Shown piece after piece: positions 33,166 through 43,939 of a stretch of DNA of 64,000 nucleotides (position 1 is its first letter; each line of letters begins with the position of its first letter). Position numbers and translations under genes: made by a program. A model generated the notes under the pieces. It saw nothing but the letters and a program-made list of their open reading frames with translations. It was not told the origin of the DNA and ran no database searches. Origin of the DNA: Octopus sinensis (taxonomy: Eukaryota); NCBI RefSeq assembly GCF_006345805.1, contig NC_043015.1:42594001-42658000 (forward strand). The letters are read 5' to 3'.

Positions 33166-36100
33166 GGTGGTGAAGTCAGCAAGCCAGGAAAAATGCTTAG
33201 TAGCATTTCATCTATTCTTCCGAGGTTGACTTTGCTTTTCGTCCTTTTGAGGTAATGAAATAAATACCTGTAGAACAGTGGGTTTGATGTAATCAACTTG
33301 CCTATTCCACAAATTTTCATATAAACATATATATATTATATATACATGAATGTATGTGTGTGTGTGTGTGGTAGATAGTTAAACTAAGAGAATTTGAGTT
33401 AATACTCAGCCTCGTGCTAAGAACACCATCCAAGCATGATCGTAACCAGAGCGGCTAACTGGCTTCCGTGCCAGTGGCATGTGTAAAAGATTCGAGCGAA
33501 GTCGTTGCCAGTACCGCCTGACTGGCCCCCGTGCCAGTGGCATGTAAAAAGCACTTGCTACACTCTCGGAGTGGTTGGCGTTAGGAAGGGCATCCAGCTG
33601 TAGAAACTCTGCCAGATCAAGACTGGAGCCTGGTGCAGCCATCTGGTTCGCCAGCCCACAGTCAAACCGTCCAACCCATGCTAGCATGGAAAGCGGACGT
33701 TAAACAATGATGATGATGATGATGAAGTCATACTAATTTCACGAAGCCTACAAAAAGGAAGTAATTAATGTTACCTTTTTGGTTTGTAATTTCTGTACAT
33801 TTGGAGACGTTTAATGGTGGTCCGGTCCCTCATGTTATGTCCACCATGCCCTTCAGATTTGGGGCGATCTGGAAAAAAAAAAAAAAATAAATAAACAATG
33901 GGAAAACATGAAATTAGGAATTAACAGCTTATATGGAAATTTAAGAAAATATGATCTGTTGAAATAGCAATTTGTGGTTTTAGGTGTAAGGTCTTGTAGC
34001 TGTAACTGGTCATGAAAGGTACTGGATCATCAATTCACAGGTTGTAAGTTCAAATCCTTCACAAACATCATCATCATTTAACGTCCGCTTTCCATGCTAG
34101 CATGGGTTGGACGATTTGACTGAGGTCTGGCAGAGTTTCTACAGCTGGATGCCCTTCCTAACACCAACCACTCCAAGAGTGTAGTGGGTGCTTTTACGTG
34201 TCACCGGCACAAGCGCCAGTTTGGTGGTACTGGCATCGGCCACGCCCAAATGGTGCTTTTTATGTGCCACCTGCACAGGAGCCAGTCCAGCGGCACTGGT
34301 GACGACCTCACTCGTGCCACCAGCACAAATGCTACCATTATTTCTCTAGGCAGGACTTGACAATTAACCCTTTTGATATTAACACATCTGAGACTCTCCC
34401 AGCTTCTACAATACAGTCATCCTGTTTTGAAGTGATACAAATTCAAACTTTCCATCAGAATTTCCTGTTAATTTATGTCCAAAACACCAGTTTCATAATC
34501 CTTTGTCCAAAACACCAGTTTCATAGGCAGAGGGCCTGAAATTTGGGGGTGAAGGGGTCTAACCGATTACATCAACCCCCAGAGCTCAACTGATACTTAT
34601 TTTATCTAACACCAGAAGGATGAAAGGGGACCTTGGCAGAACTTGAAGACAGAAACGTAAAGAAATCGAACTTGGTGTGAAACTATAAATTTACCGAATA
34701 TTCTCCAAGTGGTTGGTGATGGAGCAGAGATAGTGTAAAATCGAGAGGGCCCTTTGGCTTTCTTCAAGACATGATCTAGTGTGCTGGTTTCACAATAAAG
34801 TACACCCAATGCAGTCTGTAAAGTGATCCAGCTGAGAAACTATAGCAAAAACGAAACATATGTGTTGGAGAGTAACTTTGAACAAAAACTGCTGGGCCAG
34901 AGGATATACGGCTTGTATATAAATAATAATACCATTGCTCAACTCAAGAAGGCATGGAACTAATTTTGACGTCCACTTTCCATGTTTGCATACGTCAAAA
35001 TATATTGTAGAACTGGATGCCCATCCTGTCGCCAACCCTCATCCGTTTCCAAAGAAAGTAATATTTTTTCCTTGACCAGACTGCCGGCATCAGTTGTTAG
35101 TTATCGGAGCACTGCATCCTTCAAAACTTCCATGCTTCCTGAGATTCGTCAACACTACACCTGATTTTCTGATAATGTCGTTATATCTATACTCCACAAC
35201 CCACGAAAATACCCAAAGTGAAATGTCTTGATTTGGTCGAGTTATATCGAAAGAATACCAACTTTGGTCAGCCAAGAGTTACTAGCACTTCTATCTCTTG
35301 TTAATTATTTCCAAATAAGGTTCCATACCATTTAACAAACTCATTTGTCAGTATCATCGTCATCATCCCTGGATATTACTGTATTGAGTCCTACGATTAC
35401 CTGGAATTCATGGTGTAGAAGTGACCGAGATCACAACATTCACCCTGAATGGGATGCCAGTCCATCGCAGGTTTACTCGTCAACAGGTGACCCGACTGGA
35501 GCAACTCTGCTCCAGAAAAACGACGAGCCACCTGGTCCGCGAACCGAAACCACGATCCAACGATCTCCAGTGCAACACTCTAACCACAACTAAGACACGC
35601 ACCTTCACTGCCGTCATTTGTGAAATGATTAAGTTGAAGAAATATGAGAAACCACATGTAAAATATGTCAAGTTATTTAGTGGGGGGGGGGGTAAAGTGG
35701 AGTGGCGATCTTGCATTAATTCCTATTTTCCTTTTTCTCAAAAGCAATGAAAAATCGAATATCAATAACTAAATACATAGAATCGACACAGAGATATAAA
35801 TTTCTTTACTAAATCTTTTCTCCTTTGGAAGCGAATAATGTTTTATCTTCATGTACATGTTCTAATAAGTCACACAATATATATTTCTTTACTACCCACA
35901 AGGGGCTAAACACAGAGGGGACAAACAAGGGACAGGCAAAGGGATTAAGTCGATTGCATCGACCCCAGTGCGTAACTGGTACTTAATTTATCGACCCCCG
36001 AAGGGATGAAAGGCAAAGTCGACCTCGGCAGAATTTGAACCCAGAACGCAACGGCAGACGAAATACCTATTTCTACTTCTTTACTACCCACAAGGGGGCT

Positions 36101-36620
36101 AAACACAAAAGGGACAAACAAGGACAGACATAGGTATTAAGTCGATTATATCGACCCCAGTGCATAACTGGTACTTATTTAATCGACCCCGAAAGGATGG
36201 GGACGGCAGACGAAATACCCATTTCTTTATTGCACACAAGGGGCTAAACATAGAGGGGACAAACAAGGACAGAGAAACGGATTAAGTCGATTACATCAAC
36301 CCTAGTGCATAACTGGTACTTATTTAATCGACCCCGAAGTGATGAAAGGCAAAGTCGACCTCGGCGGAATTCGAACCCAGACGAAATACGGCTACGCATT
36401 TCGCCCGACGTGCTAACGACTCCGCCAGCTCCGTGGCTTAAAAATCACACAATTTAGGACCAAGACACGTTTACAGCAAAAAAGACAAACACGTGGTGGA
36501 CCAAAAAGCAAAGGAAAATAAACATCGAAATAACTCACCTATATTCATACTATGGCTAGATTTATTAAGCCTTTCGGGCCTCTTGCCCCTTTGGCCCCTG
36601 TGTACTTTGTTACTGACCAT
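11624..36620 (-). CDS. GNL2: Nucleolar GTP-binding protein 2 (Nog2/NGP1), 15 coding exons, 764 aa
   Basis: complement(join(11624..11722,13016..13188,15614..16226,17681..17767,19483..19641,20551..20655,23322..23450,25189..25302,26001..26159,28225..28377,29340..29438,29946..30079,32382..32476,33775..33868,36539..36620)) = 2295 nt. All introns are GT-AG and the phases are consistent. Motifs: NGP1NT ([16 protein letters not shown]), [23 protein letters not shown]. Confidence 0.95.
13016..13188 (-). CDS. GNL2: GNL2 exon 14 (basic, KNKKRKQKR...PKLTGKQ)
   Basis: Phase-1 acceptor TTTCAG|CT; donor GTAAGT. Confidence 0.85.
13555..13967 (+). mobile_element. tRNA-derived SINE family 2 (AGGCGCAGGAGTGGCTGTGTGG...AGTAAAAGAG tail), internal (TA)n/(TG)n
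   Basis: Many near-identical copies: also 17143-17552(+), 19042-19449(-), 22378-22757(-), 22863-23270(-), 28630-29190(-), 62620-62990(-) and partial copies. A/B-box-like head. Confidence 0.85.
14256..14640 (-). mobile_element. tRNA-derived SINE family 1 (GTGGAGGCGCAATGGCCCAGTGG...GTGCTTCCA), full length with 13-bp TSD
   Basis: TSD CATTGAATTTTAT at 14243-14255 and 14641-14653; tRNA-like head; 3' stem-loops. Confidence 0.9.
14750..15057 (-). mobile_element. SINE sharing the family-1 head but with a different 3' tail
   Basis: 14880-15057 matches the family-1 head and body; 14750-14880 is an unrelated tail. Confidence 0.7.
15161..15390. mobile_element. Fold-back MITE (PIF/Harbinger-like), TTA TSD
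   Basis: TTA|AGGCTACCATTGGTTTCATGTTAAGAAAA ... TTTTCTTAACATGAAACCAATGGTAGCCT|TTA; the arms extend almost to the centre. Confidence 0.75.
15614..16226 (-). CDS. GNL2: GNL2 exon 13, 613-nt acidic low-complexity exon
   Basis: Open frame containing VQPEFVADD (cf. V.PQF..DD); a phase-0 acceptor and phase-1 donor fit the neighbouring exons. Confidence 0.85.
16370..16770 (-). mobile_element. Interspersed retroposon family 4 with (GAT)n tail and internal GTGCCACCGGCAC repeats
   Basis: More than 15 full or partial copies, e.g. 12230-12490, 19950-20340, 24230-24470, 25760-25935, 30700-31050, 33420-33725, 34070-34325, 43150-43490, 48915-49350, 51850-52180, 59830-60290. Confidence 0.85.
17681..17767 (-). 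CDS. GNL2: GNL2 exon 12 ([29 protein letters not shown])
   Basis: Conserved LNDWQRG..P.F. Confidence 0.95.
18089..18307. mobile_element. piggyBac-like MITE (TTAA TSD, CCCTTTC..TAC TIR)
   Basis: TTAA|CCCTTTCATTAC...GTAATGAAAGGG|TTAA; a second copy lies at 54069-54289. Confidence 0.8.
19483..19641 (-). CDS. GNL2: GNL2 exon 11 ([19 protein letters not shown]...GKLLK)
   Basis: Conserved helical domain; AG/GT boundaries. Confidence 0.93.
20551..20655 (-). CDS. GNL2: GNL2 exon 10 ([22 protein letters not shown]...)
   Basis: G3 motif DCPG. Confidence 0.95.
21362..21453 (-). tRNA. tRNA-Lys(UUU) with a 19-nt intron at position 37/38 (two stem mismatches; function uncertain)
   Basis: GCCCACATAGTTCAGTCGGTAGAGCATCAGACTTTTA[TAGGTCAACTTTAGAAGTA]ATCTGAGGGACGCGGGTTCGAGTCCCTCTGCGGGCG. 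A and B boxes present, C32:G anticodon-intron pair present, followed by TTTATTT. Mismatches A5.C68 and C50.U64. Confidence 0.8.
21469..21560 (-). pseudogene. Second tandem tRNA-Lys(UUU) copy with intron; acceptor stem and D-loop GG damaged
   Basis: 107-bp offset from the first copy; 5' CCTGGCA versus 3' TGCGGGT; G18>A; intron TAGGTCAGCCTTAGAAGTA. Confidence 0.75.
23322..23450 (-). CDS. GNL2: GNL2 exon 9 ([27 protein letters not shown]...GETK)
   Basis: P-loop G1 and G2 motifs. Confidence 0.95.
23550..23870 (+). mobile_element. tRNA-derived SINE, further family with CORE-like TTGAGCAAGACACTT
   Basis: Head GGCTCAGTGGTTAGAGC...GTTCGAATCC; the same head recurs at ~51525-51590. Confidence 0.65.
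24698..25079 (-). mobile_element. SINE family 1, full length, 13-bp TSD
   Basis: TSD CATGCTTGCTTAT at 24685-24697 and 25080-25092. Confidence 0.9.
25189..25302 (-). CDS. GNL2: GNL2 exon 8 ([38 protein letters not shown])
   Basis: Conserved AFHAS..N.FGKG...LLRQF. Confidence 0.93.
26001..26159 (-). CDS. GNL2: GNL2 exon 7 ([21 protein letters not shown]...[11 protein letters not shown])
   Basis: G5 and G4 motifs of circularly permuted GTPases. Confidence 0.95.
26438..27590. repeat. Minisatellite of nine 114/129-bp units amplified from the internal repeats of retroposon family 4 (GNL2 intron 6)
   Basis: GGCACGTAAAA(A/T)GCACC (GAACG variant in two units) recurs at 26447, 26576, 26705, 26819, 26948, 27062, ~27191, ~27319, 27432 and 27561; flanked by family-4 sequence. 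Confidence 0.9.
27783..28129 (+). mobile_element. RTE-X-like LINE 3' end with (ATG)n tail
   Basis: [41 protein letters not shown], then LLLWKP...[11 protein letters not shown]...[12 protein letters not shown]. Confidence 0.75.
28225..28377 (-). CDS. GNL2: GNL2 exon 6 (...[14 protein letters not shown])
   Basis: Conserved GQSKRIW.ELYK; not shown in the ORF track. Confidence 0.93.
29340..29438 (-). CDS. GNL2: GNL2 exon 5 ([26 protein letters not shown]...)
   Basis: Conserved H.LDTES...TFG.K.QRKRP. Confidence 0.93.
29946..30079 (-). CDS. GNL2: GNL2 exon 4 ([18 protein letters not shown]...[12 protein letters not shown])
   Basis: Conserved NGP1NT sequence; AG/GT boundaries. Confidence 0.93.
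32382..32476 (-). CDS. GNL2: GNL2 exon 3 ([32 protein letters not shown])
   Basis: Conserved VARVEPN..WF; AG/GT boundaries. Confidence 0.93.
33775..33868 (-). CDS. GNL2: GNL2 exon 2 ([31 protein letters not shown])
   Basis: Matches the NMRDRATIRRLNMY motif; AG/GT boundaries. Confidence 0.92.
35883..36432 (-). mobile_element. SINE family 3 concatemer (3 units)
   Basis: Repeats of TTTCTTTACTACCCACAAGGGG...GCAGACGAAATAC; only the last unit continues into the tRNA-like head. Confidence 0.85.
36539..36620 (-). CDS. GNL2: GNL2 exon 1 ([27 protein letters not shown])
   Basis: ATG at 36620; donor GTGAGT; phase 1 joins to exon 2. Confidence 0.85.
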
Positions 36621-37363
36621 CTTTCCCCCCTTTGTTTTGCCAGAACTTGTAAAAGAATTGCCAGGAAAAATACAGAAATCAACAACGATGTCACTTTCAG
36701 AACTTTATTAATGCAGATGAATTATTCGCTGGCGGTGATTGGATGAAATTAAAATCGAAATGTTTTAACAAAAGAAAACGAATTACGATATTAAGTAAAT
36801 TAATTTATTTTATTTAGATTTTTTAATATGCAATTTACATAATATTTTAAGTTAATAACATATTATTATTAATATTGTATAGCATTTTTATATTGCATTT
36901 GCTGCCGAACACAATTGCATCAAACCGGTGTACTTGAAAATAAGTAATGTCTGTTTAAAATTCCGTAATACGAATTGAGTTTTATTTTTTTCATTCATAA
37001 AATTTGAGTCGCGTGTTCATTTCTTCATATAGCATGTAGCATACAAAAAGGCGATCCTTCGGTATAGGTACCGTAAGTACCGGAAGTGGCTTTATTTACA
37101 TTTCTGAAGATAACAAAAACCCTTTTCTCCCACCCCTAACCCTAACCCTAACACCCCATATATATATTTTTAAAAAATCACTTTCTTGAAATGTATCCGG
37201 TACTTCCGGTACCTATACCGAAGTTACGCCCAAAAACACAAAGTAAGGATCAACTAGTCACGACTAGCCAGCGCGGAGTAAGCGAGTGCGCGCACCGAGA
37301 CCACTGTTGCTAACTCTTTAACGTCGTGAGATAGGTTTCGTGCACAACGTTGTATTTTCAAAA
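36621..37363. promoter_or_regulatory. Probable bidirectional promoter between GNL2 and the CENP-W-like gene
   Basis: The divergent ATGs are 743 bp apart; locally CpG-rich at 37255-37350 (including palindromic TGCGCGCA). TSS not determined. Confidence 0.6.
37050..37230. mobile_element. MITE with ~35-bp TIRs and internal (CCCTAA)n
   Basis: GGCGATCCTTCGGTATAGGTACCGTAAGTACCGGA / TCCGGTACTTCCGGTACCTATACCGAAGTTACGCC; CAAAAA flanks both sides. Confidence 0.75.
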
Positions 37364-37474
37364 ATGTCCCGCAATATTTGTCCTCATCGATCTGGAACTT
37401 GTATAGCTGCAAAAAACGTCATCAAGAAATATAAGAGGAAATATAGGATTGCTGGCGATAATTCGATGAATATG
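37364..37474 (+). CDS. CENPW: CENP-W-like exon 1
   Basis: AAAATG start; 37 codons; donor GTAAGC. Confidence 0.7.
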
Positions 37475-40335
37475 GTAAGCCTCTGAGATTAATGATTTCC
37501 TTTTGTTTTTAAATCTAAATTACGAATGTGGCAGGAAATCTCCGTCTCAAATAAAGACACTTCCTTTAGTAATATTTAGAAAAAGGAAGAAATTATTCGC
37601 GTCTGGGTGTTTATTAGCGGTTCCCAACCGTTTATTCTGTTTGCTCGCTGGCAATTTTGGAAAGTAAATTTACATAGCCTTCCTCCTGCTCTGTTTTGTT
37701 TAGTAATTTGACTTGCACCCCGGCGGAGGTAAAGAATACTCATGCCACCCGTTTTATATTTCTATTTCTTTACTGCCCACAAGGGGCTACACACAGAGGG
37801 GACAAACAAGGACAGACATAGGTATTAAGTCGATTACATCGACCCCAATGCGTAACTGGTACTTAATTTATCGACCCCAAAAGAATGAAAGGCAAAGTCG
37901 ACCTCGGCGGAATTTGAACTCGGAACGAAACGGCAGACGAAATACCTGTTTCTTTACTACCCACAAGGGGCTAAACATGGAGGGGACAAACAAGGACAGA
38001 CAAAGGAATTAAGTCGATTACATCGACCCCAGTGCGTAACTGGTACTTAATTTATAGACCTCGGTAGAATTTGAACTCAGAACGTAACGGCAGACGAAAT
38101 ACGGCTACGCACTTCGCCAGGCGTGCTAACCACTCTGCCAGCTCGACGTAACCCTAAACCTAAAAGTTACTCTAACCTTAACCCTACACCTAACCCTAAA
38201 CGCCGAAAACAGGTGGTGTGCTTCTTCTACTTTTATAACATTCCTTCGATATAACTCGACAAAATCAAAACATTTCACTTCGGGGTATTTCCGTGGAAAC
38301 AAATGACAGTTCGATTCTGTTTTCTTCTTGGAAATTTGCGGTTCCCTTTGAAATGGGTGTATTTTCGTGTCACATCCATTTCATTAATACCATTATATGC
38401 ACCCCCAACAATCGGAATATATAGTCGTACCTGGTTTTATGAATTTTTTGATAAGGGGTAAAAGAGTTTCAGAGGAACGGTCAGGTACGAAAACTAGAAC
38501 CCCTTTCTTGTCTTCTCTGTACCACTGTTCGCTAGTAGTACCAGAACAAATATGCAAGGCATTTTTTCTTGAAGTTTAAAATGAGACATTGCTGGCGTAA
38601 TTTCGTTATATCCATACTCCACAACCCACGAAAATACCCAAAGTGAAATGTTTTGATTTTGTCGAGTTATATCGAAGGAATGCCAACAACTGACAAGAAG
38701 GAAACTTGAAACACTATTTATAGAGTTTATTATTTGGCATAACTGCGGATTTCTGATTTAAGCACGCCATATCAACTTCTTGTAACTTCTTTTATCTTTG
38801 GGAATTTTCAGAAAATTTTTGCGAAAACACAGCGATCTGGCAGAATAGTTAGGATGATGGTAGGTGTAATTTATCCTCTGTAGGATGAGCTAAAGGAAAA
38901 TGTGTGTATTGCACAAAATATTTTTTTACCAGGATTTTGTACCTTATAACTAATGATGTTGATCGTGTATATGAGTGTGGCTTATATACAGGTAAACCAT
39001 GTAAATCTGTTATAATGGATGGAAGCACTCCGTCGGTTATGACGCCGAGGGTTCCGATTGATCCGAATCAACGGAACAGCCTGCTCGTGAAATTAACGTG
39101 TAAGTGGCTGAGCACTCCACAGACACGTGTACCCTTAACGTAGTTCTCGGGGATATTCAGCGTGACACAGAGAGTGACAAGGCCGGCCCTTTGAAATACA
39201 GGTACAACAGAAACAGGAAGTAAGAGTGAGAGAAAGTTGTGGTGAAAGAGTACAGCAGGGATCACCACCATCCCCTGCCGGAGCCTCGTGGAGCTTTTAG
39301 GTGTTTTCGCTCAATAAACACTCACAACGCCCGGTCTGGGAATCGAAACCGTGATCCTACGACCACGAGTCCGCTGCCCTAACCACTGGGCCATTGCGCC
39401 TCCACAAATCGGTTATAAAAGGTAAGCATCATTAAAGCATTTCAAAATATATATCAATCTATCTTTCTTTTCTGTTGTTTTAGGTATGGTTATCGTATTT
39501 GAAGTTCCTTGAAATGTTTAGTAAAGATCTACGTGAATATGCTGCAGAGAATCAAATTAAGAAATATACGCCTTCTCAAATAAATAAACTATATGTTGTA
39601 AGTCTGAGATTTTTTTATCATTTATTTTTCTTTTGCCTTAGTTGGATTTTCTAATATTTCCCTGTTTTTTTAACAATGGAGTTCCTTTTCTTTCATTCTT
39701 TAGTCTTTAGATTGCAGCCATGGTGTGCTGTTGTGGGGTATGGGATCTTTTAGCTCAGCTGTTTTGGCATCACTGATTCGATGCTGACTTATTTGACAGC
39801 AGGCGTTTTAAAAGGTCCAGAATGGGTTAACCCTTTAGTGTTTAAACCGGCCATATCTGGCCCAGATATTCTACATGTTTTATATTCAAACTGGCCATAT
39901 CCAGCCTCTTACACCTAACCTACATTGACATTCTAAAAATAGACAATTACATCATTGTAACCTCAAAGATATAACATAATGCATGATTCATTCAAAACAA
40001 TTTGAGTGAAAAAGTATTGCATTTAACAGAGTAATCTGAACACTAAAGGGTTAAAAGGTAGAGGTGTATTATGAAGAAAGGCAGAGGGATATCAGGGTGT
40101 GGAGTTTGGTAGGGATGGTGAATGAGATAAAAGGAAGATTAGATGCTTGACAGCAATAAAAGTGACCCAGGGGAGTGAGAGTGCTGCGTGGAATACGAAT
40201 GTTTTGGCAGAATTTCATTAAAACAATTTTTTTGTTTTACAATAGTAATTATTCATTATATAAATATATTTTTCGTTATATAAATATGGTTTTTAATTCC
40301 TTTTCCAGGATAAAATGGAGAAATACAAGATATGA
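37364..40335 (+). CDS. CENPW: Small 3-exon gene, 83 aa, probable CENP-W (histone-fold kinetochore protein)
   Basis: join(37364..37474,39484..39597,40309..40335), all phase 0 with GTAAG donors and pyrimidine-rich acceptors. Protein: MSRNICPHRSGTCIAAKNVIKKYKRKYRIAGDNSMNM|VWLSYLKFLEMFSKDLREYAAENQIKKYTPSQINKLYV|DKMEKYKI*. The pattern aligns without gaps in exon 2 to vertebrate CENP-W as recalled (VHLNCLLFVHRLAEESRTNA...), and the 38-aa middle and 8-aa last exons match. Identity is low. Confidence 0.7.
37764..38145 (-). mobile_element. SINE family 3 concatemer (2 units)
   Basis: Same junction as the 35883 array. Confidence 0.8.
38240..38685. mobile_element. MITE with ~58-bp TIRs
   Basis: CATTCCTTCGATATAACTCGACAAAATCAAAACATTTCACTT at 38240 is inverted at ~38640-38685; a partial copy lies at ~35180-35260. 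Confidence 0.7.
39016..39405 (-). mobile_element. SINE family 1, full length, 13-bp TSD (1 mismatch)
   Basis: AAATCTGTTATAA / AAATCGGTTATAA flanks. Confidence 0.9.
39484..39597 (+). CDS. CENPW: CENP-W-like exon 2 (114 nt, long histone-fold helix)
   Basis: TTTTAG|GTA TGG TTA...; donor GTAAGT. Confidence 0.75.
39831..40050. mobile_element. TTAA-flanked MITE, second piggyBac-like family
   Basis: TTAA|CCCTTTAG...CTAAAGGG|TTAA; related copies at ~41020-41185 and ~45535-45757. Confidence 0.7.
40309..40335 (+). CDS. CENPW: CENP-W-like exon 3 (DKMEKYKI*)
   Basis: Acceptor TTCCTTTTCCAG|GAT; TGA at 40333-40335. Confidence 0.6.
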   Translation, partial: DKMEKYKI

Positions 40336-41268
40336 CTTGGACATAAAATACTTGGCAAGAAATTTTAAAAATTCCTTTTTTTTAAAAAAAAATATGCTTA
40401 GACATTCCCATTGCTCAATGGATGTTTCTGGATACTTTCTGATCACATTTTTCCCTTGCTGGCTCCATTCTTCGAAGAGGTCTCTTCACTGATCTTTGCC
40501 ACGCTGCCTTGACACTTTGAGAACATCCCTTTTGCTATGGTAGCTTCATTCTTTGAAGATGTCCTTTTTTTTTCCCCCTTTTTTGTTCACGAAGTATTTT
40601 TATTAAGGTTGCCATAATATTCATCATACTTTTGAAATGATGCCTCTTTTTAAAACAAAGCTGAAGCAAGATGGGGAATCAATGAGGGGTTAATTGTTTG
40701 TTTTTTTTAACCCCTATTTTCTTTTTATTTCGTATAATTCAGTTTTACACTCAATAATGTGTTTTTACACTTTTGTCTGTTTTTAAAAAACATTTTTTCC
40801 CCTTTTAACATAAAAAAAAATTTCGCCTTAATGTAGTCTTGTCTAACCTATGAAATCAAAGAAAAATAGATATTAGTACAGACAGAGCTGTGTGGTTAAG
40901 TAAGCCACTTTGCAACCACCTGGTTTCAGGTTCAATCTCACCCAGTAGCTCCTTAATCCTTAATCCTGAAGCATTCAGATTATTCTATGAAATATGTTTA
41001 TTTTATTCAAATTGGCTTGGATTGATGATGCATTATCTCACTTCTAGATTTCAGTCATGTGATTGCATATTTTTACAATGACATTGTAGGGTATGCATGA
41101 GAGACCAAATCTGGTTGGTTTGAACATAAAAACAAGTAGGATATTTAGGCCAGATATGGCTGGTTTAAATATCAAAGGGGTTAAGTGAATGTCTTCTGCT
41201 ATATAGCCCTGGATTGACCAATGCCTTGTGAGTGAATTTAGTAGGCGGAAACTGTGTTGAAGCCCATG

Positions 41269-41299
<31 letters not shown>

Positions 41300-43939
41300 T
41301 TTTGTTTTTCTCCCCATCATTTAACAGCCAGTGTTGGTTTGTTTATGTCCTTGTAACTTAGCAACTTGGCAGAAGCTGATAAAATAAATACCAAACTTAA
41401 AAAAACAAAAATTGTTGAATGGTTGATTCGTTTGAATGCACCCTTCAAGGCAGTGCTCCAGTATGGCCACAGTCCAGTGATTGAAATGAGTACAAGAAAG
41501 AAAAGATTTTTCTTCTCCACAATTTTTTTTAATTTTGTTTTCCTTGTAAAAATGTAAAATAAAACTTTATTGGCGTTTATATTCTGTACAGCTGATCTTT
41601 TATTTTTTGAATATTGGTTAAAAACAGCTCCACTCCTGGTTGAGTTATTGGCTGTGGTGAAAGACATGATTGTAAAATAAAAAATAAAAAATACATTCTC
41701 GAGTTATATAATATGCAGTTTTTTAAATTTTGTATTATAAAAAAAAAAAGAATAAAAAGAAATACAGAACCTGTGGAGGCGCAATGGCCCAGTGGTCAGG
41801 GCAGCGGACTTGCGGTCGGAGGATCGCGGTTTCGATTCCCAGACCGGGCGTTGTGTGTGTTTATTGAGCGAAAACACCTAAAAGCTCCACGAGGCTCCGG
41901 CAGGAGGTGGTGATCCCTGCTGTACTCTTTCACCACTCTAAAAGGCGGTGCTCCAGCATGGCCGCAGTCAAATGACTGAAACAAGTACAGTACAGAAAAC
42001 CTCATCCATGTCCTGGTGGAATGATGGAAATGGTAAAATAAAATAATGTAAACCAATAAATTGTTTTGATATTTGTTCATTCCTTTTAAAATTTCTTCCG
42101 TGCATCATGTTTGCAGTTCCACTCCGTCTCCCAGCTGAAAGGTCAGCGTCTCACAAGTTACTTAGTAACCCTGTTGTTGTCAGTGTCATGTCAAAAGCAC
42201 CCAGTACACTCTGTAAAATGGTTGATGTTAGGAAGGGTATCCAGCTGTAGAAATCGTGCCGAAGCAGAGAAACGGGGCATGGCGTGATTCTCTGGCTTGC
42301 CAGATCCTCTCAAGCCCATTTCTTTACTACCCACAAGGGAGCCAAACAGAGAGGACAAACAAGGACAGACAAACGGATTAAGTCGATTACATAGACCCCA
42401 GTGGGTAACTGGTACTTAATTTATTGACCCCGAAAGGATGAAAAGCAAAGTCGACCTCGGCGGAATTTGAACTCAGAACGTAACGGCAGACGAAATACGG
42501 CTACGCATTTCGCCCGGCGTGCTAACGATTCTGCCACCTCTCAAGCCATCCAACCCAAGTCAGCATGGGAGACAGATGTTAAACGATTATAAACATCAAC
42601 CTCTGTTACTCTATGGTTGGCTTGGAGGAATTGGTGATCATCTCCGTTTTGGATAAAAACATGGGAATTCCTGATAAAGTCTTGCAAGAATTATTGATAA
42701 ACAAAAACAAGAAATCAAGTGGAACAACTCTTGGATATATATATATATATATATGATCATCATCATCATGAACGACAAATGAGGGTTCAGGAAAATAAAG
42801 CAGTGTAATCATGTTCTATGGACACGAGTGTGTCTCTTGAGGTGGTGAGCTGGCAGAAACGTTAGCATGCCAGACGAAAATGTTTAGCCATATTTTGTCT
42901 GCCGTTACATTCTGAGTTCAAATTCCGCCGTGGTCGACTTTGCTTTTCATCCTTTCGGGGTCGATAAATTAAGTACCAGTTACACACTGGGGTTGATCTA
43001 ATTGACTTAATCCCTTTGTCTGTCCCCTCTGTGTTTAACCCCTTGTGGGCAATAAAGGAATACAAATGTGTCTCTTGAGGCCTGCAGGTGCCTTGCAAAC
43101 CTTTTAGTAAATGGAATAAGTTGAGGATTCTGCATGAGTACCATGATCGTTACCTGCGTCGCCTTACTAGCACTTGTGCCGGTGGCACGTGAGAAAACAT
43201 TCGAGCGAGGTCGTTGCCAGTGCTGCTGGACTGGCTCCTGTGCAGGTGGCACATAAAAAGCACCATTTGAGCATGGCTGTTGCCAGTATCGCCTGACTGG
43301 CTCTCGTGCCGGTGGCACGCAAAAAGAACCCACTGCACTCTCGGAGTGGTTGGGGTTAGGAAGGACATCCAGCTGTAGAAACCCTGCCAGATCAGATTGA
43401 AGTCTGGTGCAGCCATCTGGTTCGCCAGTCCTCAGTCAAATCGTCCAACCCATGCTAGCATGGAAAGCGGATGTTAAATGATGATGATGACATCAAGGAT
43501 CTCTCTCTGTTTTGTGCCAGAAAACTGCAATGACAGAAAAAGGCTTCCATTTAGCGGAGCAGTATTTTCCCAGCATGCTTTTGTGCTTGCATGAAGTTGG
43601 AGTCAACTTTACTGAAATCTTTGAACTGAGAAGAAGCAAGACTGGCACCAGGTCCTGCATTCTGATGCTTTGTCCCCACAATTGGTTGATAACTGCTATT
43701 GGTTTGTTTACGGCCCCATAGCTTAAAAGTTTGGCATAAGTACCGGACTTTAAAAATAAGTCCTGGGGATCGATTTGTTTGGCTAAAACCCTTCAAGGTG
43801 GTGCCCCAGTATGGCCACAGTCCAATACACTGAAGCAAGTAAATGACAAACGATACGTATTTTAAATTTTTTATTTCTCTCTAAGAATACAAAGACTTGC
43901 TGAAAGTTTCTGTTTTTACATAACTTCATATTCTCTCGC

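Follow-up and report, generated by a model that had tools for sequence, protein, structure and literature searches.

Three short exons in a 64,000-nucleotide stretch of Octopus sinensis DNA (NCBI RefSeq assembly GCF_006345805.1, contig NC_043015.1, positions 42,594,001 to 42,658,000 of the forward strand; the whole stretch is called the window here) encode an 83-residue protein that we take, with a probability of about 75%, to be the CENP-W orthologue of octopus. CENP-T of the inner kinetochore has CENP-W as its obligate partner. Most likely the gene adds a new, unusually diverged member to this known family, one that standard annotation leaves unnamed. The searches that point to CENP-W, the intron positions that strengthen the case and the controls that qualify it are presented below, together with the other identities that the same data would allow.

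Re-reading and splicing of the sequence reproduced every coordinate of the three-exon gene (Table 1), which an earlier note on this DNA had described as phase-0 exons of 111, 114 and 27 nt with good splice sites. Exon 1 starts with the ATG at 37364 and ends in AATATG, followed by the donor gtaagc. Exon 2 at 39484 is preceded by ttctgttgttttag (ttgttttag, then GTATGG) and ends in TATGTT at 39597, with the donor gtaagt, and exon 3 at 40309 is preceded by ttccttttccag (cttttccag, then GATAAA) and closes with ATATGA, the TGA lying at 40333-40335. Both introns are in phase 0, with canonical GT-AG ends and polypyrimidine tracts. Splicing and translation of the three intervals gives a basic protein (isoelectric point 9.8) of 83 residues, beginning MSRNICPHRS and ending MEKYKI (full sequence MSRNICPHRSGTCIAAKNVIKKYKRKYRIAGDNSMNMVWLSYLKFLEMFSKDLREYAAENQIKKYTPSQINKLYVDKMEKYKI). 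The start codon has an A at position -3, and an in-frame stop is found 15 codons upstream, so the open reading frame (ORF) is not the tail of a longer one. No ORF of at least 60 residues arises from any of the three exons; each is too short, which explains why the gene had been found missing from the list of ORFs.

Table 1. The 83-residue gene and neighbouring features, in window coordinates.
Feature	Positions	Strand	Description
Intergenic region and 5' untranslated region between head-to-head genes	36621..37363		start codon at ~36620 (minus strand) to ATG at 37364
Coding exon 1	37364..37474	+	111 nt, M1-M37; basic N-terminal tail, predicted alpha1, loop L1
Intron 1	37475..39483	+	phase 0, at the L1/alpha2 boundary; GT..AG with polypyrimidine tract
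Repeat insertion in intron 1	39019..39406		388 bp, missing in the O. vulgaris orthologue of this intron; plays no part in the gene's function
Coding exon 2	39484..39597	+	114 nt, V38-V75; long central helix alpha2, loop L2, start of alpha3
Intron 2	39598..40308	+	phase 0, gtaagt..ccag, 8 codons ahead of the stop
Coding exon 3	40309..40335	+	24 nt + TGA, D76-I83; end of alpha3

The family assignment rests first on a search of known structures. When phmmer was run with the octopus protein against all 177,635 distinct PDB sequences, the top three matches were chicken CENP-W (E=0.0013-0.0018), and the next one was unrelated (E=0.76). A profile made from the three Octopus orthologues described below retrieved the same three chicken CENP-W chains and nothing else at E<=10. 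Neither search returned any other histone-fold protein, and since the PDB covers every major histone-fold family, the CENP-W-only result is specific. In the HMMER alignment, K17-I29 pairs with chicken RKIIKKHKPHLRL and V38-A57 pairs ungapped with VHLSFLLFLHRLAEEARTNA; both alignments quoted in the earlier note were thereby obtained again without prompting.

Family identity was also tested with hidden Markov models (HMMs) of CENP-W, the CENP-T fold, CENP-S and CENP-X, for which the orthologue sets curated by van Hooff et al. 2017 (PMC5579357, Dataset EV1) were used. The octopus protein scores 19.1 bits (P=6e-8) with CENP-W, 8.7 bits with the CENP-T fold, 5.7 bits with CENP-S and 0.9 bits with CENP-X, and the corresponding hhalign probabilities are 86%, 10%, 3% and 0.4%. 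CENP-W is thus the best of these four histone-fold families from the CCAN (constitutive centromere-associated network), ahead by ~10 bits. None of ~20,000 shuffled sequences reached the observed score, the best shuffle giving 12.7 bits. When all 2,113 stop-to-stop fragments from the six frames of the window were scanned blindly, the CENP-W HMM ranked the exon-2 fragment first. Furthermore, a wider CENP-W profile, with animals, fungi, a choanoflagellate and a stramenopile in place of amniotes only, raised the score from 14.5 to 19.1 bits, as would be expected for a true homologue. The hhalign comparison is informative only with this diverse set, and is weak against the amniote-only CENP-W alignment (P=0.0013, probability 18%). 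Pairwise comparisons reach P<=3e-5 with five independent CENP-Ws, namely those of Saccoglossus, S. pombe, Mucor, Neurospora and Debaryomyces. By these comparisons, the similarity to CENP-W is significant and better than that to other histone-fold families, with a small margin over the cross-family noise of 16.4 bits considered below.

The same scores bear on the other subunits of the CENP-T-W-S-X particle. CENP-X (MHF2) is an ~80-residue histone-fold protein and would fit the octopus protein in size; its closest paralogue is CENP-W, and the reverse holds too (Tromer et al. 2019, cited in PMC9252888). However, the HMM and hhalign values for CENP-X are the lowest of the four, and the C-terminal signature of that family (PF09415), HxEKILPQLLLDF, is absent from the octopus protein, so a CENP-X identity is effectively refuted. 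CENP-T (PF15511) was rejected as well: its members, of 360-900 residues, recruit the outer kinetochore through a long N-terminal region and carry a two-helix extension behind the histone fold, whereas the octopus ORF, bounded by the upstream stop and the TGA, has only 83 residues, lacks both parts and gives 8.7 bits. Nor are the exons part of a larger CENP-T gene, which is ruled out by the upstream in-frame stop and by the 83-residue models in two annotated genomes. CENP-S, for its part, carries a HAKR.T...DVKLL.RR signature that is missing here.

How far can a borderline sequence match be taken? The positions of the introns offer a separate line of evidence, compared among histone-fold families for CENP-W only, in octopus, raptor and musk deer. 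The raptor gene (locus L002, assembly GCA_947461875.1) has exons of 90, 114 and 27 nt and the musk deer gene exons of 126, 114 and 27 nt, with both introns in phase 0 in each. Exon 2 of 114 nt and exon 3 of 27 nt (stop included) are therefore common to octopus, raptor and musk deer, and the sizes of 38 and 8 residues that the earlier note gives for the middle and last coding exons of human CENP-W were verified in the raptor and musk deer genes. HMMER, which is blind to introns, aligns octopus V38 with chicken V31, and intron 1 falls at the same aligned codon boundary in all three genes (M37|V38 in octopus, L30|V31 in the bird and L42|V43 in musk deer). The module that begins with exon 2 and runs to the C-terminus has 46 residues, ungapped, in octopus, bird and Saccoglossus, and intron 2 follows residue 38 of this module in octopus, bird and musk deer. 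In Dataset EV1 (PMC5579357), human CenpW is represented by an isoform in which 14 residues are inserted exactly at the exon 1/2 junction. With two introns that coincide exactly in position and phase, and with the same exon lengths, the borderline sequence match becomes a probable orthology.

The predicted structure is consistent with this assignment. AlphaFold2, given an Octopus-only alignment, places helices at residues 10-27, 33-59 and 67-82, with a central helix of 27 residues. These would correspond to alpha1, alpha2 and alpha3 of a bare histone fold in a protein of ~75-90 residues without extensions. In a Foldseek search of the PDB, the top four matches were CENP-W chains (3b0d_C, 3vh5_W, 3b0c_W and 7xho_W), followed mostly by H2B, H4, H3 and MHF1 chains and a few unrelated ones. 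Taken together, the profile comparisons and the model place the protein, as a prediction, in the histone-fold superfamily. The octopus protein also resembles the CENP-W family (vertebrate CENPW/CUG2, fungal Wip1/New1; PF15510) in its size, its basic charge and its bare histone fold. For example, the basic residues of alpha1 are kept, with octopus K17, K21, K22, K24 and R28 corresponding to chicken R11, K15, K16, K18 and R22, and the alpha2 pattern LxxLxF...A.EN is present. CENP-X/MHF2 and CENP-S/MHF1 are likewise small histone-fold subunits of the CENP-T-W-S-X particle.

Several observations weigh against a CENP-W identity. By the refuting condition that the earlier note set for profile searches, the result is mixed: the CENP-W model PF15510 matched none of the three Octopus proteins at E<=10, and the only match was a weak, sub-threshold one to CENP-T_C (E=0.11, 13 bits against a cut-off of 28.1). 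At least 150 amniote CENP-Ws, among the matches listed, all carry PF15510. The score of 19.1 bits is barely higher than the 16.4 bits that the same HMM reaches on CENP-X sequences, and in hhalign the octopus-W score equals the X-W score. When each member was left out of the profile in turn, genuine CENP-Ws, the stramenopile one included, scored 36-80 bits, far above the octopus protein; fish and hemichordate CENP-W gave 55-59 bits against 19 for octopus, and only S. cerevisiae Wip1 was lower (12 bits). Among the animal CENP-Ws tested, the octopus protein is by far the most diverged. Two family features are missing as well. The C-terminus is KYKI here and KYKK in O. bimaculoides, where 13 of 16 curated CENP-Ws end in [KRQ]G, so the replacement of the terminal RG by KI that had been remarked on is borne out (KK in O. 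bimaculoides). The N-terminal P-R/K motif is absent, octopus having GTCIAAK where most CENP-Ws have (Y/A)PR..L+. Furthermore, the AlphaFold2 model is of low confidence, with a predicted local distance difference test (pLDDT) score of 63, and none of the Foldseek E-values (0.24-2.4) is significant. Finally, an exhaustive HMMER profile search of 1.8 billion protein representatives at E<=0.001 returned no relative outside Octopus.

Beyond the query itself, that search listed two long, unrelated-looking proteins, and at the same threshold it contained no squid, nautilus or other mollusc relative. Either the orthologues are unannotated elsewhere, or divergence within cephalopods has been very fast. 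In word-indexed searches, the octopus protein found the O. bimaculoides cluster only, and for human CENP-W and a mixed alignment the matches listed were all from amniotes, with no invertebrate bridge among them.

From these controls, sequence alone shows a histone fold closest to CENP-W and stops short of orthology. The protein could be a histone-fold protein of another kind, cephalopod-specific or heavily repurposed, for example from a CENP-T/S-like or some other histone-fold lineage, with a different partner or role. Similarity at the cross-family level and the missing C-terminal G, PR motif and outside relatives would all fit such an origin, and so would the order of the other families, for true CENP-Ws are closer to CENP-X than to CENP-T and the octopus protein ranks T > S > X. 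Its alpha2 has DLREYAA at the end, similar to DLExFA.HA in CENP-T and CENP-S, a likeness that is probably the source of the sole Pfam match. On the other hand, CENP-W leads T, S and X by at least 10 bits and is the only family retrieved from the PDB, both introns coincide exactly with those of CENP-W, and there is no Pfam match to NF-YB, NC2, CHRAC, POLE3/4, TAFs or core histones. The protein is also without the N-terminus and two-helix extension of CENP-T and without the LPQLLLDF of CENP-X. We consider a histone-fold protein that is not a CENP-W orthologue unlikely. The loss of the terminal RG and PR motifs, the CENP-T/S-like DLxEYA helix end and the lack of detectable relatives outside Octopus have also suggested a remodelled cephalopod CENP-W with an altered CENP-T-W interface or DNA-binding surface, or else a lineage-specific histone-fold protein acting outside the kinetochore; this is quite unlikely. 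The diverged CENP-W described in the earlier note is partly supported: for it stand the single family matched in the PDB, the lead of ~10 bits and the two matching introns, and against it the silent Pfam CENP-W model and a score near the cross-family level. Of the identities considered, it has the best support.

That the 83-residue gene is real has high probability. It had been presented as hidden, which is overstated, since UniProt and GenBank already contain three-exon, 83-residue models of it from two Octopus species; what holds is that they are listed only as an uncharacterized protein, with neither name nor domain. The O. bimaculoides counterpart (UniProt A0A0L8H315, 'Uncharacterized protein') has 83 residues and is 88% identical locally (BLASTP) and 87% identical over its full length. 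The O. vulgaris counterpart (CAI9736626.1, 'Hypothetical predicted protein') is 96% identical and belongs to the same cluster as the O. bimaculoides protein. The exact protein of the window has no entry in the protein collection searched. At the orthologous locus of O. vulgaris (L001), all three exons recur with their splice sites, and the 60 nt upstream of the ATG are identical.

Even across non-coding DNA, the window and the O. vulgaris locus are 92-95% identical, as close relatives would be, and conservation seen only in this pair therefore counts for little. This leaves room for the exons to be no functional coding gene at all, that is, a chance ORF or a non-coding transcript propagated between related genomes by prediction pipelines. 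The absence of any domain match over a curated threshold would agree with that, as would the lack of a canonical poly(A) signal within 1 kb of the stop. Neither AATAAA nor ATTAAA occurs in the first 1.05 kb past the stop (40336-41383), the first AATAAA being at 41383, and thus the 3' untranslated region is long or a variant signal is used. However, the coding sequence differs from that of O. vulgaris at only 8 of 252 nt (five synonymous and three non-synonymous; omega ~0.13), a divergence of 3.2% against ~5-9% for the flanking non-coding DNA. O. bimaculoides, which is more distant, keeps the start, the stop and the length of the ORF as well as all four splice sites, and W39-A57, the core of the long helix alpha2, is invariant across the three Octopus species. 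A chance ORF, moreover, would not match CENP-W specifically in the PDB and share both of its intron positions. That the three exons are no functional coding gene is highly improbable.

If the gene encodes CENP-W, what is known from chicken, human and yeast suggests how its product would act. The 83-residue protein would form an obligate handshake heterodimer with the C-terminal histone fold of CENP-T at the inner kinetochore. Together with CENP-S-X, the CENP-T-W dimer would make up a tetramer resembling a nucleosome, which binds linker DNA at centromeres and bends it, as in other members of the family. This particle would in turn anchor CENP-T so that its N-terminal tail could recruit the Ndc80 and Mis12 complexes. 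The mode of action of CENP-T-W-S-X is reviewed in PMC9252888.

As a CENP-W, the octopus sequence has evolved unusually fast, and for this reason family databases leave the gene unnamed. Being short and fast-evolving, CENP-W is under-detected in maps of the inner kinetochore more generally. This point, already made in the earlier note, is a fair one, given that the 2017 survey of van Hooff et al. (PMC5579357) lists CENP-T without CENP-W for Danio (zebrafish), Ciona and Capsaspora. That dataset includes no mollusc, and in the literature searched no paper mentions octopus, other molluscan or lophotrochozoan CENP-W or CCAN. A silkworm parallel is the CCAN of Bombyx mori, also a protostome in which standard searches miss CENP-W. 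There, the absence is considered real and is compensated by an altered CENP-T fold (PMC13281801), whereas Octopus, unlike Bombyx, has a candidate gene. Naming the octopus gene would fill the cephalopod gap and provide both a seed sequence and an intron-position criterion for finding lophotrochozoan CENP-Ws, and such finds would help to tell real losses, as in Bombyx, from detection failures. The gain is one of annotation and brings no new mechanism; a CCAN is expected in molluscs.

Upstream, the gene is arranged head to head with a neighbour on the minus strand, whose product in O. vulgaris has 785 residues and no Pfam match and whose start codon is ~743 bp from the ATG. The two genes probably share a bidirectional promoter, a role suggested by this arrangement. 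Motif matches between them include ETS-like CCGGAAG at 37080 and 37203 (reverse complement), along with a CHR-like TTCAAA right before the ATG, at 37357; these are motif matches only and were given no weight.

Repeats surround the exons. A copy at L001 18978-19365 matches the 388-bp element of intron 1 with 96.6% identity in reverse orientation, and 2.4 kb downstream, at 41772-41936, lies a partial second copy. The element has the look of a repeat that was mobile recently and differs between close Octopus relatives. In addition, a family of ~180-bp repeats, both tandem and dispersed, occurs at 35872-36381, 37757-38145 (within intron 1), 42315-42540 and 42847-43139, with many copies at the O. 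vulgaris locus, and Tandem Repeats Finder (TRF) reports a 145-bp period at 36077-36338. The downstream neighbour is on the minus strand (L001 16181-22298, corresponding to the window from ~43900 onwards) and encodes a 397-residue product in O. vulgaris with weak LRR and TMOD-LMOD Pfam matches.

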